The position numbers and the translations under genes were made by a program. From the sequence record OR805295.1: a stretch of 64,000 bases of DNA. One strand, given 5' to 3'. Numbering within the stretch: the first letter of the stretch is position 1; each line of letters opens with the position of its first letter. Below, one piece after another: positions 4,879-10,709 of this stretch. The notes under the pieces were generated by a model, which saw only the letters and a list, made by a program, of their open reading frames with translations, had not been told where the DNA came from and searched no databases.

Positions 4879-5268
4879 TTGAGATTACCAATGTATAATT
4901 TCGAAAAGTTTATAACCGAGTATCTGTATAATAAAAAAGAGACAGAGCATTACGGGTATTTTTCTATATATAATTCTATTATTTTAAAGTGTATTTCTGG
5001 ATGTTCAGATGAGCACTACGAATTTATTTCTAATTCTTTTATATCATATAAATGTAAAAAGAAATTAATAATAGAATTTTCTGTTAAATCGAAAGATAAC
5101 ATATACCATTCCATTAAACTTGCAGCAAAATATCACTCTAAAACAAAAGAAAAGTTAGACACTATTACTAATGTGGATAATTTATTTTTGTTTGAAACAA
5201 AAATAGGAATTATAGGTAATAATTTGTCTGTATATGTAGATTTAGGCGAAGTAGAATATATTGTATGA
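4879..5268 (+). CDS. Hypothetical protein
   Basis: 129 aa ORF. Confidence 0.6.
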   Translation: MRLPMYNFEKFITEYLYNKKETEHYGYFSIYNSIILKCISGCSDEHYEFISNSFISYKCKKKLIIEFSVKSKDNIYHSIKLAAKYHSKTKEKLDTITNVDNLFLFETKIGIIGNNLSVYVDLGEVEYIV

Positions 5269-5901: not shown

Positions 5902-6231
5902 ATGAAAAATATAATTAAACATATTTTAGATTTTTATAACGGATTTTCCTATATAGTTCTATCAAACGTTATATTTCTTTTCAGTTGTATAGTAACTACA
6001 GTATTTCTGTGTTATGTGTCTAAATTAAATAATGTACAAAATTTGGTATCCGACTCGGTTTATACAACTATAGTAGTTTTGTATTGTATTATAGGTCTTC
6101 TATGTGGATTAAAAAGTTGTAAAATAATAGAATTGATAAAACCAGAGAAAAATATTGCAACTACTGTAGGTGTTATAACCGGCATCGCCGTAGTGTTAGT
6201 TGCTATGTTGGGATGGATATATGCGGCGTAA
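5902..6231 (+). CDS. Membrane protein
   Basis: Three hydrophobic segments. Confidence 0.7.
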   Translation: MKNIIKHILDFYNGFSYIVLSNVIFLFSCIVTTVFLCYVSKLNNVQNLVSDSVYTTIVVLYCIIGLLCGLKSCKIIELIKPEKNIATTVGVITGIAVVLVAMLGWIYAA

Positions 6232-7648
6232 TAGAAATCTTTCATCTTCTCATAGATTGATATCAAAAGTAGCCGTTAAGATTAAAATTCCCCATATGAT
6301 GAGCGGGAAATTAAATGGAGCATTTGATCACTATTTTAGTAAGAATATAATAGCAGAGGATGCTGCTATCTGTAGATGGGCAGGAGATAGCAAATATGCA
6401 GGAAGATCGTCGATATATTCTGACGATATACCCCGTCAATTAATACGCAACACTGCAGGAAATGTCTCAGGTTGCACATCTTACACTAACAAAGTTATTA
6501 TGAATTATAAAGAGGATGCCGGAATGACTCAAGTTAACAGAACCTACACACGTAATAGTAACGATATTGAGTTTTCTCTGGAAGAAGAATTCTCTAATGT
6601 CTTTAATGAATCGCCTATAAGAAAAACGTGGGTAGCATTTATAGATTGTAACACAAAGGCAGTAGAAGAAGCATTTAAAACTTGCCTAAGTAAAGAATCG
6701 TTTGATATAATCTCCAAAAAATATACAAATATAACATCTTATTCGTCATCTGATGCAGAGCGAGATGCAGACGTTGCATCTGAGGAAATTTGGGTAATAG
6801 GAAACGAAAAAGCAGCTATTTCTAGAATTACAGATATTTACGATAGTGTACGGTTTATGGTAATTTCTGCAAATGATAGTTGTAATGTAGCTAGGTTTGT
6901 AGAAGAATTTGGAAAAGTATATGCAAATGCATATCCTAAAGTAAAAGAAGAAAAACCGGAAATTAATATTATTGTGGCTGATTCCCACGGTTATGATTTA
7001 GAGTCGTTTGACATGACTCCTCTGCAAAACATAGATGCCTTTATTGAAGAAAATTATAACGATGATTTTAAAGACACATCTGAATATATAGTAGAAAAAA
7101 TTATTAGTTCTAGTAAAGGTATAACACTCCTTCATGGCGAACGAGGAACTGGTAAAACTAATTTCATCCGATACATTGCAAATAAAGCTAAAAAGAAGAA
7201 ACTCATATATGTTCCTTCCGATATGGCTCCGGAGTTAGCCAGACCTCAGTTTGTCTCGTTTGTTATGAACCACAAAGATAGTGTGTTTATAGTAGAAGAC
7301 GCAGAAAATATTCTCCGTCCTCGGGAAGGCGGCGGCAGTTCAGCAGTGTCTAACCTTCTTAACATGAGTGACGGTATCCTAGGTGATGCTGTTCGGTGTC
7401 AGTTTATTTGTACGTTTAACTGTAAAATTTCAGAAATTGACAGTGCATTGACTCGTAAAGGTCGGTTAAATGCAGAGTATGAATTTAACAAATTAACAAA
7501 AGAAAAATCCCAAAATCTTTTAGACAAAAAATACGGAACAGGAACATATGTAGCAAAAGGCGAAATGACGCTAGCAGACATTTACAATATGGATAATCCT
7601 GACTTTAAAGTCCAACTTAAGAAACAAAAAATTGGTTTCGGGAACTAA
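6200..7648 (+). CDS. AAA+ family ATPase (true start may be ATG 6296)
   Basis: Walker A GERGTGKT, Walker B FIVEDAE, LLNMSDGILGD, RKGRL arginine finger. Confidence 0.9.
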   Translation: MLCWDGYMRRNRNLSSSHRLISKVAVKIKIPHMMSGKLNGAFDHYFSKNIIAEDAAICRWAGDSKYAGRSSIYSDDIPRQLIRNTAGNVSGCTSYTNKVIMNYKEDAGMTQVNRTYTRNSNDIEFSLEEEFSNVFNESPIRKTWVAFIDCNTKAVEEAFKTCLSKESFDIISKKYTNITSYSSSDAERDADVASEEIWVIGNEKAAISRITDIYDSVRFMVISANDSCNVARFVEEFGKVYANAYPKVKEEKPEINIIVADSHGYDLESFDMTPLQNIDAFIEENYNDDFKDTSEYIVEKIISSSKGITLLHGERGTGKTNFIRYIANKAKKKKLIYVPSDMAPELARPQFVSFVMNHKDSVFIVEDAENILRPREGGGSSAVSNLLNMSDGILGDAVRCQFICTFNCKISEIDSALTRKGRLNAEYEFNKLTKEKSQNLLDKKYGTGTYVAKGEMTLADIYNMDNPDFKVQLKKQKIGFGN

Positions 7649-7653
7649 ACAAT

Positions 7654-7917
7654 ATGCGTAGATATTTCATTGCATATTTTTCACTGATATTCATATTAGC
7701 TATATCCGGAATTATATATGCGTTGACATATGGATTTATATTTGCCGGAAAAGAAAACTCTCCGGGGTATTCTAATAGTAGGGATAATCTTATTAAAAAT
7801 ATGAATGAATTATTGGAACAACAAAAAGCACTAAATTTGGAAATAAAGGAATTAAACAAAGAAATTAATTCTACTAAAACTGAAATATCAACAAAATTAC
7901 AAAATGTAGACACCTAA
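7654..7917 (+). CDS. Membrane-anchored coiled-coil protein
   Basis: N-terminal hydrophobic helix plus heptad-rich C-terminus. Confidence 0.7.
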   Translation: MRRYFIAYFSLIFILAISGIIYALTYGFIFAGKENSPGYSNSRDNLIKNMNELLEQQKALNLEIKELNKEINSTKTEISTKLQNVDT

Positions 7918-7932
7918 CAGTAGTTTCTATAT

Positions 7933-7965
7933 AATAAAACAGGAGCATTAGGCTCCTGTTTTATT
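7933..7965. terminator. Bidirectional terminator between convergent genes
   Basis: AATAAAACAGGAGC-attag-GCTCCTGTTTTATT. Confidence 0.85.
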
Positions 7966-8700
7966 TTTTGAAATTTTAGTCATTATAGTATTATATAAAT
8001 CATAAGCACGTTTGATTATACGTTTATATGCTCTGGGGTTTTCATTTTTAAGAAACATAATATAATTTATGTGTGCATTTTCTATAAATGCATTTATAAA
8101 TTCTTCTTTTGTTAAGACAGTTCCTTTTTTGTATAAAAAACTAAATTGATCTACAGTTTGTTCTAAAGCTTGACTTATTCTTGCATTTATTTCGTATGAT
8201 TGTCTATAATATGTATCTGAAGATGCCGGATCGTATCTTTTTATTTTTTCTTTCTTAAACGGTTGTCCTTTATTTTTATCTAGTGCATGCCTTAACTCGT
8301 GTACTATAGTTGAGACTACACTCTTGTTATTACTAAAAGAATTACCATAATAATGGGTATAAACATATATCGTATTAGATACTAAGTTGTATTCTCCTTT
8401 CTTTGCACCGTGTTGTCCAGAAATGTCAAACACTACCTGAATATCTTTAAATTCATTGTATAAATCATCGAATATATCATCAGGAATTATATTTTTTAAA
8501 ACAACACTATAGGTATTTAACATTATTTCTATAGTAGGCCAATCGTACTTTTTCAACAACAATTGATCTTCTATTTCTTCTCTGTGTTGTTTCAAATTGT
8601 TGAAATATGATACGGCGTTTGCTACACACATTTTCGCAATATTTTGAATAATCAGTTCTTCGTCTGAAGTTTCGATTAAATTAATTTCGTTTAGTCGCAC
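7948..8700 (-). CDS. Zincin-like metallopeptidase, putative head-internal protein
   Basis: HELRHALD...YEINARI; 10-aa leader MRLNEINLIE. Confidence 0.75.
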   Translation of the reverse strand: MRLNEINLIETSDEELIIQNIAKMCVANAVSYFNNLKQHREEIEDQLLLKKYDWPTIEIMLNTYSVVLKNIIPDDIFDDLYNEFKDIQVVFDISGQHGAKKGEYNLVSNTIYVYTHYYGNSFSNNKSVVSTIVHELRHALDKNKGQPFKKEKIKRYDPASSDTYYRQSYEINARISQALEQTVDQFSFLYKKGTVLTKEEFINAFIENAHINYIMFLKNENPRAYKRIIKRAYDLYNTIMTKISKNKTGA

Positions 8701-9370
8701 GATTTTCTGCCCTTTTCTTTAATGTAACATACAATTCGTAACATCTAGATACTATTCGTTTCCATACTTTTGGATTTTCTTTCTTTAAGTATGTAAGCTG
8801 ATGACCTTTTGCGAATTTTTCTATATTATCTAGAAACCATTCTTTGGATGGTATTTCTTTTGAAGATCCCCAATACTGCAAAAATATAACCTTAAGATCA
8901 TTTAATAATTCGGCTATTCTTGCATTTATTTCGTATTTTTGATTTAAATATTCTTTATGTTTATCTGAATTGTTTGTATGTTTATATAATAATGGATTAC
9001 CCTTAGAACTATCTAATGCATGTTGTAATTCATGAACTAAGGTATTTGTGTATGTTATATCATTTTTATATGAATCCGGACCTATATCAAAAAGTGCTAT
9101 GAGATTTTTGCCATCAGTTCTTTGAATAAAAGCACCGTTGTATTGTTCTGGATGCTCACTTGCATACGGACGTATTATTAAATCGGAAATATTATTTAAA
9201 ATAGGATACTTATCGAAATATTCTTGTTTTATTAAATCTTTTAGTTTGTATGAATTGTATATTTTATTTTCTGCATTCTTTTCTATAACAAACCATATTA
9301 TTTTTGCAATAGTAGATAATATTATACTTTCGCTTGCCTTTTCCGTTAGATTAAATTCTAAAATTTTCAT
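8681..9370 (-). CDS. Zincin-like metallopeptidase, paralog of 7948-8700
   Basis: HELQHALD...YEINARI; leader MKILEFNLTE; shared KxENPxxxKRI. Confidence 0.75.
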   Translation of the reverse strand: MKILEFNLTEKASESIILSTIAKIIWFVIEKNAENKIYNSYKLKDLIKQEYFDKYPILNNISDLIIRPYASEHPEQYNGAFIQRTDGKNLIALFDIGPDSYKNDITYTNTLVHELQHALDSSKGNPLLYKHTNNSDKHKEYLNQKYEINARIAELLNDLKVIFLQYWGSSKEIPSKEWFLDNIEKFAKGHQLTYLKKENPKVWKRIVSRCYELYVTLKKRAENRATKRN

Positions 9371-9376
9371 TATATC

Positions 9377-9571
9377 CTATCCGTTATGTTTCCAATACTG
9401 GATAGATTTTTCTTGTTTAGAAACCCAGTCTTTAGAAGGTTTTCCTTTACCCTCATAATATCTAAGGGGCTTCCCTGTCTTTTTAGAAACAAGTGCCCAT
9501 TTTCCATTTATATGTTTTAATTCTTCGTCTAATTCTGACGATTCTAGTATGCATATTTCGGAAAGTTTCAT
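9377..9571 (-). CDS. Small basic putative head-internal protein
   Basis: Leader MKLSEICILE; GKWALVSKKTGK motif. Confidence 0.75.
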   Translation of the reverse strand: MKLSEICILESSELDEELKHINGKWALVSKKTGKPLRYYEGKGKPSKDWVSKQEKSIQYWKHNG

Positions 9572-9599
9572 AATCTTTAATCCTGTATTATATGTATAT

Positions 9600-9632
9600 G
9601 CTTATTTATCGCATTATATAACTAAATAGTGT
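9600..9632. promoter_or_regulatory. Divergent T4-like late promoter motifs
   Basis: GATAAATA on minus strand toward 9571 and ACTAAATA on plus strand toward 9657; resemble T4 late TATAAATA. Confidence 0.5.
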
Positions 9633-9656
9633 TATCTTGTAAAGGAGGAGTTTTCC

Positions 9657-10637
9657 ATGGGAAGACCTATTAAAAGCGATTGGTTTGGTGAAAGCGAAAC
9701 AGGCCAACCTAAGTTAAGCATATATGCTAAGTTACCTGGTATGACTAATGCTGCCGAGGGTTTTATAGTAGCACAAAAAGGTACTCGTAAATATAAAGTA
9801 AACGTTAACGACACTATAGGCGATGTCTTTCTAGTTAATTCTAAATTAGCTGATTTAAACGAAGGCGAAGGGGTTATATTCGTAGGCGAAGTAGATAGTG
9901 ACATAACTGTTTCTAAAATACAACAATACGGATTAGTAGCAGTTAATTCCACTGGCGAAATTCAATTCGGCGGACAAACCCAATGGGTAGTAGACGAAGA
10001 AACAGGATTACAACCTGATACTAGTTCTGTCCCGCAACCAAGTAATCAAACGTTGCTTGCAAATGCCAGTACTGCATTTAAGAAAGAAAACGGAACATTA
10101 TGGACTGGTTCGGGAATACCGGCATCAGGAATGTTAGTATCTAAAAATAATATAATTGAACTTGCATTGTCTGCACACTTGCGCGGTTCTGTTATTAACA
10201 GAAAAATAAACGACGACGGTTCGTATGATATATCTCTAACTTCTTCAACACAAGATTGGGCGTTTGACTATTGTGTAGGTATTGTATCGCCGGCAGTAAC
10301 AGATATAACTACAGAATACGACGTTGTTCTTACTGCATATTGCAATTCAGAAGGTAAAGAACAAAACCCAGCTGTATTTACTTTAGCAAAAGAAGATACA
10401 TATGTATGGAAAAATACAGTTCTAGACGGAGATATTACTGACAGTGCATCCGATCCCGATAATCGGTGTGTTCAAAATACTCTTAGATATACGTTCTTTA
10501 AAGATAATGTTGTGCCTCCAGTAGGTGAAGAAGATCCTATAGTAGGTACATTTATTATCAAATTAGAAGCAACCCATAAAACTAACTTTAATACTGTTAG
10601 TGCAAAAATGATAGTTCGTGTAACAAAAGATTTTTAA
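9657..10637 (+). CDS. Putative virion structural protein
   Basis: MGRPIKSDWFG N-terminus, beta-rich composition, AAGGAGGAG RBS, late-type motif. Confidence 0.6.
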   Translation: MGRPIKSDWFGESETGQPKLSIYAKLPGMTNAAEGFIVAQKGTRKYKVNVNDTIGDVFLVNSKLADLNEGEGVIFVGEVDSDITVSKIQQYGLVAVNSTGEIQFGGQTQWVVDEETGLQPDTSSVPQPSNQTLLANASTAFKKENGTLWTGSGIPASGMLVSKNNIIELALSAHLRGSVINRKINDDGSYDISLTSSTQDWAFDYCVGIVSPAVTDITTEYDVVLTAYCNSEGKEQNPAVFTLAKEDTYVWKNTVLDGDITDSASDPDNRCVQNTLRYTFFKDNVVPPVGEEDPIVGTFIIKLEATHKTNFNTVSAKMIVRVTKDF

Positions 10638-10650
10638 TAAAATCTAAACA

Positions 10651-10680
10651 AAGAAAAGCGCTTTTATATGCGCTTTTCTT
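10651..10680. terminator. Intrinsic terminator
   Basis: AAGAAAAGCGC-8-GCGCTTTTCTT. Confidence 0.75.
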
Positions 10681-10709
10681 TTGACACAGTTACTGTTTAA
10701 TTGTATTAT
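10681..10709 (+). promoter_or_regulatory. sigma70 promoter
   Basis: TTGACA-17-TATTAT. Confidence 0.85.

Follow-up and report, generated by a model that had tools for sequence, protein, structure and literature searches.

In the genome of Pseudomonas phage Paride, one of the PA5oct-like jumbo phages (Arenbergviridae, Wroclawvirus, about 287 kb), there are three adjacent genes whose products each start with a ten-residue leader ending in (L/I)-x-E, as do the propeptides that phage T4 has on its internal proteins. We judge it somewhat probable, if by no means certain, that these genes constitute a late operon for three head-packaged proteins, that their leaders would dock on the prohead core and be removed by an S77 protease, and that the cargo would leave the head together with the DNA. 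Unless indicated otherwise, coordinates refer to a window of 64 kb, which corresponds to positions 124001-188000 of the Paride record (OR805295.1). A first-pass annotation of this window had drawn attention to the three genes and quoted their N-terminal 10-mers, and the translations of the minus-strand open reading frames (ORFs) bear this out.

Layout of the cassette

The cassette consists of three tightly packed minus-strand ORFs that are arranged head to tail and encode proteins of 64, 229 and 250 amino acids, referred to here as genes A, B and C, respectively (Table 1). Gene B starts 6 nucleotides beyond the stop codon of gene A, gene C overlaps gene B by 20 nucleotides, and each of the three start codons is preceded by a ribosome-binding site of the AGG/GGA type. 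All genes on both flanks are located on the plus strand, so that the cassette is indeed opposite in strand to its neighbours, as had been proposed. The region 7600-10700 is 100% identical to positions 131600-134700 of Paride and shares 98-99% identity with ten other PA5oct-like jumbo phages.

The start of gene C is annotated differently in two records. In the Paride record the gene is a shorter ORF of 684 nucleotides that begins at an internal ATG (8631), whereas the PA5oct record uses a GTG. The internal start would remove the leader and part of helix 1. We favour the GTG at 8700 as the start codon, because the homologues align from residue 1 and because helix 1 is predicted at residues 12-38.

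The leaders obey the cleavage rule of the T4 prohead protease

A strict leader motif, M-[KR]-[LIVM]-x-E-[LIVFM]-x-[LIVM]-x-E, was written post hoc from the three leaders. Among 993 start/ORF combinations in the window it matches the three cassette starts only, and a genome-wide scan, which the first-pass annotation had suggested as a check, returned the same three and no others among the 4316 start/ORF combinations of the whole PA5oct genome. Shuffling of the N-termini gave an average expectation of 0.024 strict matches as compared to the 3 observed ones, all of which are adjacent.

The proposed ending of the leaders in (L/I)-x-E is kept across a family of 36 HExxH proteins to which the products of genes B and C belong. 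The last leader residue is a glutamate in 36/36 members and the residue two positions before it is a leucine in 22/36 or an isoleucine in 12/36 (L or I in 34/36), while the residue in between is free, with 11 different identities. As judged from this alignment, the constraint is the gp21 cleavage rule, which also applies to the type of protease that the phage itself encodes, and across the family E10 varies as little as the catalytic residues do. The claim that the leaders have exactly ten residues holds for the Paride 10-mers, but ten is not a family constant, the leader length being 8-11 residues in 33/36 members, and gene A probably has a second site. The AlphaFold2 models suggest that the leaders are low-confidence N-terminal extensions outside the confident folds. 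For the gene C product, residues 1-10 have a mean predicted local distance difference test score (pLDDT) of 66 and are followed by blocks of 96 or more, with helix 1 starting at residue 12; in this model the leader does not pack against the folded part. For the gene A product, residues 1-10 are disordered (mean pLDDT 47).

A looser leader pattern matches T4 ipII and ipIII. In PA5oct, it also matches gp150, gp205 and gp238 as well as gp271 from an internal start, and 5 of its 7 matches belong to proteins flagged in the PA5oct record as found by tandem mass spectrometry with electrospray ionization (ESI-MS/MS; P about 0.005), counts that are suggestive only because the same pattern also matches T4 gene e and e.5. 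Outside the window, leader-like N-termini were seen in gp150 (encoded just after the portal), in gp205 and in the adjacent gp237 and gp238, all of which carry the ESI-MS/MS flag; gp237 has a 10-mer similar to the leaders. The leader-like N-terminus of gp271, which is likewise encoded outside the window, starts from an internal methionine, and this protein is not flagged. Within the window, the plus-strand gene at 4891-5268 encodes a homologue of gp375 (125 amino acids) with an N-terminal 10-mer that has E5 and ends in I-T-E. It is located among plus-strand non-virion genes, was not detected by mass spectrometry, and its likeness to the leaders is possibly due to chance.

A T4-type head module and reported virion presence

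The gp21-type protease context assumed in the first-pass annotation is present in these phages, in the form of a Peptidase_S77 protein and a T4-like order of head genes. PA5oct gp152 matches Pfam Peptidase_S77, the T4 gp21 family of prohead proteases, with an E-value of 5e-24, and is 100% identical in Paride (genome positions 242491-243120). Its closest relatives are found in other phages of 300-490 kb, including Stenotrophomonas phage RAS14. The genes for the portal (gp149), a small core protein of 73 amino acids (gp150), a core protein (gp151), the protease (gp152), gp153 (368 amino acids) and the capsid protein (gp154, which matches the Gp23 capsid family with an E-value of 1e-96) follow each other in an order that mirrors T4 genes 20-67-68-21-22-23. 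Only its position and its 19 (L/I)-x-E sites mark gp153 as scaffold-like. Early (L/I)-x-E sequences are present in core proteins of both T4 and PA5oct. The alignment of the PA5oct capsid protein with mature T4 gp23 begins too far in to separate L-T-E (19) from L-V-E (42).

In the PA5oct record (MK797984.1), gp380 (250 amino acids) and gp381 (229 amino acids), the orthologues of genes C and B, are listed as 'structural protein, ESI-MS/MS'. This annotation supports the expected presence in virions for the two large proteins; gp382, the orthologue of gene A, is not flagged. The text of the PA5oct paper does not mention the genes for gp380-gp382. Further entries of the same mass spectrometry list are ClpP, FtsH and queuosine-pathway enzymes.

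Genes B and C encode a family of predicted metallopeptidases

Genes B and C are paralogous (35% identity over the C-terminal 132 residues, E-value 3e-20) and their products both have a basic isoelectric point (pI). A word-based homologue search with the 229-residue protein returned near-identical copies only, and in a tblastn search of cultured phages the HExxH family appeared only in Wroclawvirus. The family came into reach only with an exhaustive HMMER search, which revealed 42 relatives of about 220-280 amino acids in metagenomes. In the 36-member alignment, which has a mean column identity of 22%, E10, H134, E135, H138, Y164, E170, A173, R174 and R231 are invariant. The AlphaFold2 model of the gene C product (pLDDT 92.3, predicted template modelling score 0.90) comprises a beta-sheet, an active-site helix (residues 125-143) that contains HExxH, and a Glu-bearing helix (residues 168-191) that starts with E170.

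None of the three cassette proteins reached a curated family in Pfam, PHROGs or NCBIfam. Among the curated peptidase families, the thresholds of SprT-like, DUF6782, M90, M91 and MPTase-PolyVal were all missed. Pfam matches of genes B and C were all below the curated cut-offs, the weak Pfam matches of family members were to DUF6782 (best E-value 2.5e-5, 6/36 members), SprT-like, M91 and MPTase-PolyVal, and NCBIfam gave no matches for the family. A fold search of the Protein Data Bank (PDB) gave no significant match for the models of genes A and C; the best PDB matches for gene C were HExxH domains and collagenase peptidase domains, with E-values of 0.03 or worse. Matches in BFVD were to uncharacterised proteins of other jumbo phages, the LPD38 polyvalent-protein domain, IrrE-N and SprT-like proteins. 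We read genes B and C as members of a new, uncurated family of predicted zincin-like (gluzincin-like) metallopeptidases. Possibly, this family corresponds to the 'SprT-like' peptidases of Iyer et al. 2021 (PMC7824862), of which group 2.2 jumbo phages have 1-3 copies and for which cleavage of host proteins was proposed.

One member of the family, the 570-residue metagenomic protein P0014, has its L-V-E-T-acidic site in mid-protein, behind an additional domain of ~160 residues at the N-terminus. It may consist of two cargo domains that are parted by a cleavage site.

Gene A encodes a small basic protein with two candidate cleavage sites

For the gene A product, AlphaFold2 predicts with moderate confidence a beta-beta-beta-alpha fold from residue 16. 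No family match in Pfam, no fold match in the PDB and no homologue in the word-based search were found for this protein. A second candidate cleavage site, L14-D15-E16, is located directly before the fold. The orthologues in the related contig L061 and in phage RAS14 keep L-[DN]-E at residues 14-16, but not the site at residues 8-10, I-L-E at the latter position being specific to the Paride lineage. Because the orthologues keep the former site, the propeptide of gene A probably comprises 16 residues with two sites. Two sites are common in T4 propeptides (PMC5694885).

A late-type promoter-like motif precedes the cassette

The first-pass annotation had placed the cassette behind a late-type motif. 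Indeed, GATAAATA is located 39 nucleotides upstream of the first ATG, and the window contains one further copy. The PA5oct genome has 32 copies of this motif on both strands, as compared to 44 expected from base composition, and 26 of the 32 lie 27-88 nucleotides upstream of a same-strand ribosome-binding site and start codon. The genes downstream of these copies are mostly virion genes: 17 of the 26 are flagged by ESI-MS/MS, as compared to 93 of the 461 genes overall (P about 3e-7), and the flagged ones include baseplate, sheath, tail fibre and many 'structural' genes. Motifs related to GATAAATA precede the corresponding genes in two relatives. Its distribution is what would be expected of a specific promoter motif for the late/structural genes of PA5oct-like phages. 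The cassette is most likely expressed with the structural genes, because it shares this putative promoter with them.

The exact T4 late consensus, the first base of which is poorly conserved in T4 (PMC1524935), was not found in the intergenic region of the cassette. A TATAATA box near the cassette was dismissed as a promoter, as this box has 150 copies in the window. The PA5oct genome paper lists only the sigma70-like promoter boxes TATAATA and TTGAC. Early PA5oct transcription proceeds almost exclusively from the strand opposite the cassette. Group 2 jumbo phages have small sigma factors as well as an orthologue of T4 gp33 (PMC7824862).

Conservation of the cassette and modularity of the leader

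All three genes recur in L061, a contig from a public run, with their order unchanged. There, too, the flanking genes on both sides are on the other strand, and a homologue of gp385 is found nearby. The cassette is conserved there at about 50% identity. In both large proteins 6/10 leader residues are identical between L061 and Paride, while the rest of the 229-residue protein is 28% identical. The domain of gene A is found with a leader in L061 and in phage RAS14, which has an S77 protease, and without a leader in Aeromonas phage APT65 (85 kb; L059, 2498-2665), where it is located among DNA-metabolism genes.

The HExxH family was followed through 48 IMG/VR loci, many of which are on contigs of 200-520 kb. 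Relatives of PA5oct genes, such as rIIA/B, sheath, capsid protein and DNA polymerase genes, are common in these loci. Proteins with leader-like N-termini fall into 26 unrelated clusters in the related contigs, and their genes often stand three or four in a row on one strand; the leader-bearing proteins include GH19, Amidoligase_2, KTSC and M48-like domains. Leaders of 9 residues, M-R-x-x-E-F-(L/I)-x-E, were observed in uncultured jumbo-phage contigs, namely L030 (1086-3577), L052 (6408-9845) and L025/L026/L028 (about 8900-10900 in L026 and L028). These 9-residue leaders are closer to the T4 core pattern than the Paride leaders.

Proposed route of the cargo and alternative explanations

In the sequence of events that we consider, the operon would extend from the promoter-like GATAAATA over the three packed or overlapping ORFs to a terminator hairpin. 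Each leader would dock its protein on the prohead scaffolding core, which in PA5oct would be built from gp150, gp151 and gp153 around the portal gp149. The serine protease gp152 would then cut after the conserved glutamate, i.e. after E10 in the two large proteins and after E10 and/or E16 in the small one, and the mature proteins would be kept in the head with the DNA and exit with it at infection. The two HExxH...E peptidases would probably act as proteases in the newly infected cell, whereas the third cargo would be a small basic protein like the T4 internal proteins in size and charge. We infer targeting, cleavage, location inside the head, ejection and substrate alike.

Several observations weigh against this reading. 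The strict motif was derived from the three sequences themselves, and the case therefore rests on the conservation in homologues. Helix 1 of the HExxH proteins has a conserved acidic start directly behind the leader, so that the conservation of the leader could partly serve the enzyme itself. The looser pattern produces false positives in T4 (the lysozyme gene e as well as e.5), and the enzymatic function is fixed neither by a solved structure nor by a curated family. As to virion presence, gp382 (64 amino acids) is without an ESI-MS/MS flag, and ribonucleotide reductase, thymidylate synthase and DNA ligase are among the flagged proteins of PA5oct as well. Such entries point either to contamination of the preparation or to packaging of many enzymes. 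Because metabolic enzymes are flagged too, the flag on gp380 and gp381 is a supportive but weak proof of packaging, and it does not distinguish head from tail. Lastly, the likeness to T4, which the first-pass annotation had taken as a match to the T4 targeting sequence, holds for the rule and the length, but is not a close one in the sequence itself, in which 1-4 of 10 positions are identical (2-4/10 compared with ipII and ipIII, 1-2/10 compared with ipI; AF158101) and the register is shifted by one, the acidic-hydrophobic pair of the Paride leaders being located one residue earlier.

The conserved acidic residues after the leader also lend some credit to a different role, in which the leader would be a family-specific, zymogen-like regulatory propeptide or a structural part of the enzyme, with a convergent likeness to T4 and no function as a capsid address. 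Many zincins are made as latent precursors, and the motif of the HExxH family is conserved together with those acidic residues. We nevertheless regard this explanation as unlikely, since the same kind of leader is present on the unrelated 64-residue protein and its orthologues, on gp150, gp205 and gp238 and on the 26 unrelated clusters. Moreover, the L/I-free-E constraint fits the phage's own type of protease, and the leader is detached from the fold in the AlphaFold2 model.

That the mass spectrometry flag does not localise the proteins also bears on another explanation, according to which they would be virion-associated enzymes of the tail or baseplate that cut envelope proteins or the cell wall at entry, and the motif would have no role in assembly. 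One leader-bearing protein of a related contig has a GH19 murein hydrolase domain, as would suit such enzymes. However, no signal peptide, tail-protein domain or tail-module context was found in the cassette, the family adjoins other leader-bearing genes in related contigs, and the folds are small, soluble and basic. To us, a tail location appears improbable.

We attach an equally low probability to the view that the prohead protease does cleave the proteins, but as transient core or scaffold accessories that are removed before the DNA is packaged. Such behaviour is known for T4 gp67, gp68 and gp22 (PMC9026906), and gp150 and gp153 of PA5oct have similar N-termini. It does not agree, however, with the reported presence of gp380 and gp381 in mature virions, nor with the catalytic motif, which is intact in both paralogues and in the family, as would be unexpected for a scaffold. 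Finally, N-termini that are alike by chance or by a composition bias at the start of genes can hardly account for the leaders: M-K starts and (L/I)-x-E triplets are common, the latter occurring at residues 8-10 in 49/4316 PA5oct start/ORF combinations, but the shuffles, the invariance of E10 in 36 distant homologues and the conservation of the cassette at about 50% identity led us to reject this explanation.

Table 1. Features of the leader-bearing cassette. Positions are those of the 64-kb window, except in the last row, where they are those of the loci named.
Feature	Position	Strand	Remarks
Terminator-like hairpin, 3' end of cassette	7933..7965	-	-19.2 kcal/mol, z = -7.0
Gene C, 250 amino acids	7948..8700	-	GTG start; predicted HExxH zincin-like metallopeptidase; PA5oct gp380 orthologue
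E-I-N-A-R of gene C	8179..8193	-	Residues 170-174; E170, A173 and R174 invariant
HExxH of gene C	8287..8301	-	Residues 134-138; family-invariant
Leader of gene C, MRLNEINLIE	8671..8700	-	Residues 1-10; ends L-I-E
Gene B, 229 amino acids	8681..9370	-	ATG start; predicted HExxH zincin-like metallopeptidase; PA5oct gp381 orthologue
E-I-N-A-R of gene B	8918..8932	-	Residues 147-151; Glu is candidate third metal ligand
HExxH of gene B	9020..9034	-	Residues 113-117
Leader of gene B, MKILEFNLTE	9341..9370	-	Residues 1-10; ends L-T-E
Gene A, 64 amino acids	9377..9571	-	ATG start; basic, pI 9.3; PA5oct gp382 orthologue
Second candidate cleavage site of gene A, L14-D15-E16	9524..9532	-	Directly before fold
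Leader of gene A, MKLSEICILE	9542..9571	-	Residues 1-10; ends I-L-E
Divergent intergenic region	9572..9656		Between cassette and plus-strand virion gene 9657-10637
GATAAATA, late-type promoter-like motif	9603..9610	-	39 nucleotides upstream of first ATG
Further PA5oct leader-like genes	L005 33921-34142; L006 32473-33921; L007 9341-10843 and 32881-33252

Neighbouring genes

The complement of the hairpin at the 3' end of the cassette also closes a convergent plus-strand gene. This gene (7654-7917), which would thus have a bidirectional terminator in common with the cassette, encodes a protein of 87 residues that has a membrane segment at its N-terminus, a coiled coil and weak PHROG matches to Rz-like spanin families. 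Also convergent to the cassette is a plus-strand gene for an AAA+ ATPase (6200-7648), which is annotated as BCS1-like in the MIJ3 record. A role in bringing folded proteins into the head has been proposed for phage BCS1 proteins (Iyer et al. 2021, PMC7824862). As a part of the present system the ATPase was rejected: no homologue was found in any of the 48 related loci, and we do not count it because its adjacency is not conserved.

Relation to known systems

The T4 internal proteins carry propeptides of 10-19 residues, for IPIII the first 10 residues are enough for incorporation, and in the T4 leaders residues 4 and 7 serve targeting while residues 8 and 10 serve processing (PMC9026906). The Paride cassette resembles this system in its N-terminal propeptides of ~10 residues ending in (L/I)-x-E, in the presence of a gp21-family protease and a T4-like order of core genes, in the probable expression of non-core genes with late genes, and in the 64-residue cargo, which is similarly small and basic. 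It differs from T4 in that Paride is a 287-kb member of the Arenbergviridae, that two of the cargoes are predicted enzymes, and that targeting and processing are read from the sequence. The first-pass annotation had considered an anti-restriction role like that of T4 IPI, for which we found no support. In concept, the two predicted metallopeptidase cargoes are closer to T4 Alt than to IPI. Alt, a packaged ADP-ribosyltransferase, is likewise a head-carried enzyme that is trimmed by gp21 at a short N-terminal (L/I)-x-E and ejected for action on the host (PMC5694885, PMC9026906), the cut being made at I-T-E-6 (PMC5694885), but the Paride cargo would belong to another enzyme class, that of predicted zinc peptidases.

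The ejection proteins of SPN3US and phiKZ (PMC5694885, PMC10052503) offer a second comparison, since these are also jumbo phages in which many proteins are co-packed with the DNA and propeptides are removed after a glutamate. There, however, the protease is of the diverged S80 type and cuts at S/A-x-E, whereas the PA5oct-like phages have the S77 (T4) type and L/I-x-E. The HExxH motif and the variable copy number in jumbo phages are shared with the zincins of polyvalent proteins and the SprT-like peptidases (Iyer et al. 2021, PMC7824862), a likeness that extends to the weak Pfam and structural matches (SprT-like, MPTase-PolyVal, LPD38, IrrE-N). The Paride proteins differ from these in being stand-alone proteins with a T4-type leader rather than domains of giant fusions, and no curated threshold was reached.

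We found no paper that describes leaders of the capsid-targeting kind for jumbo phages that are PA5oct-like or otherwise of the S77 type. Literature retrieved with the term capsid-targeting concerned T4 itself, or cited T4 in work on other phages, chiefly the phiKZ-like SPN3US, and the word 'leader' is not used in Iyer et al. 2021 (PMC7824862). What is most likely new here is the predicted protease cargo family, the T4-type leader in a distant phage family, and the lead to a wider system.

Implications

A wider system of this kind is conceivable, albeit doubtful at present: in PA5oct-like and related group 2.2 jumbo phages, a hitherto undescribed address label derived from T4 would load many stand-alone effectors into the capsid for co-injection, and the HExxH proteins would be injected, DNA-associated proteases that act in the first minutes of an infection by disabling host defence or nucleoid proteins. 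The effectors would then include zincin peptidase, amidoligase, KTSC and GH19 domains, which elsewhere are fused in giant polyvalent proteins.

If the proposed packaging route is true, the short cleavable capsid-targeting leader would not be peculiar to T-even phages, but would represent a general loading system of jumbo phages with a T4-type core that can be read directly from the sequence. Candidate injected proteins could then simply be listed for hundreds of uncultured jumbo phage genomes. Gene C of Paride would receive a corrected start codon, and a specific late-promoter motif, absent from the list in the genome paper, would become available for PA5oct-like phages. The new, uncurated family of packaged metallopeptidases would provide candidates for early host takeover or counter-defence in a group of phages that is studied for therapy against Pseudomonas aeruginosa.

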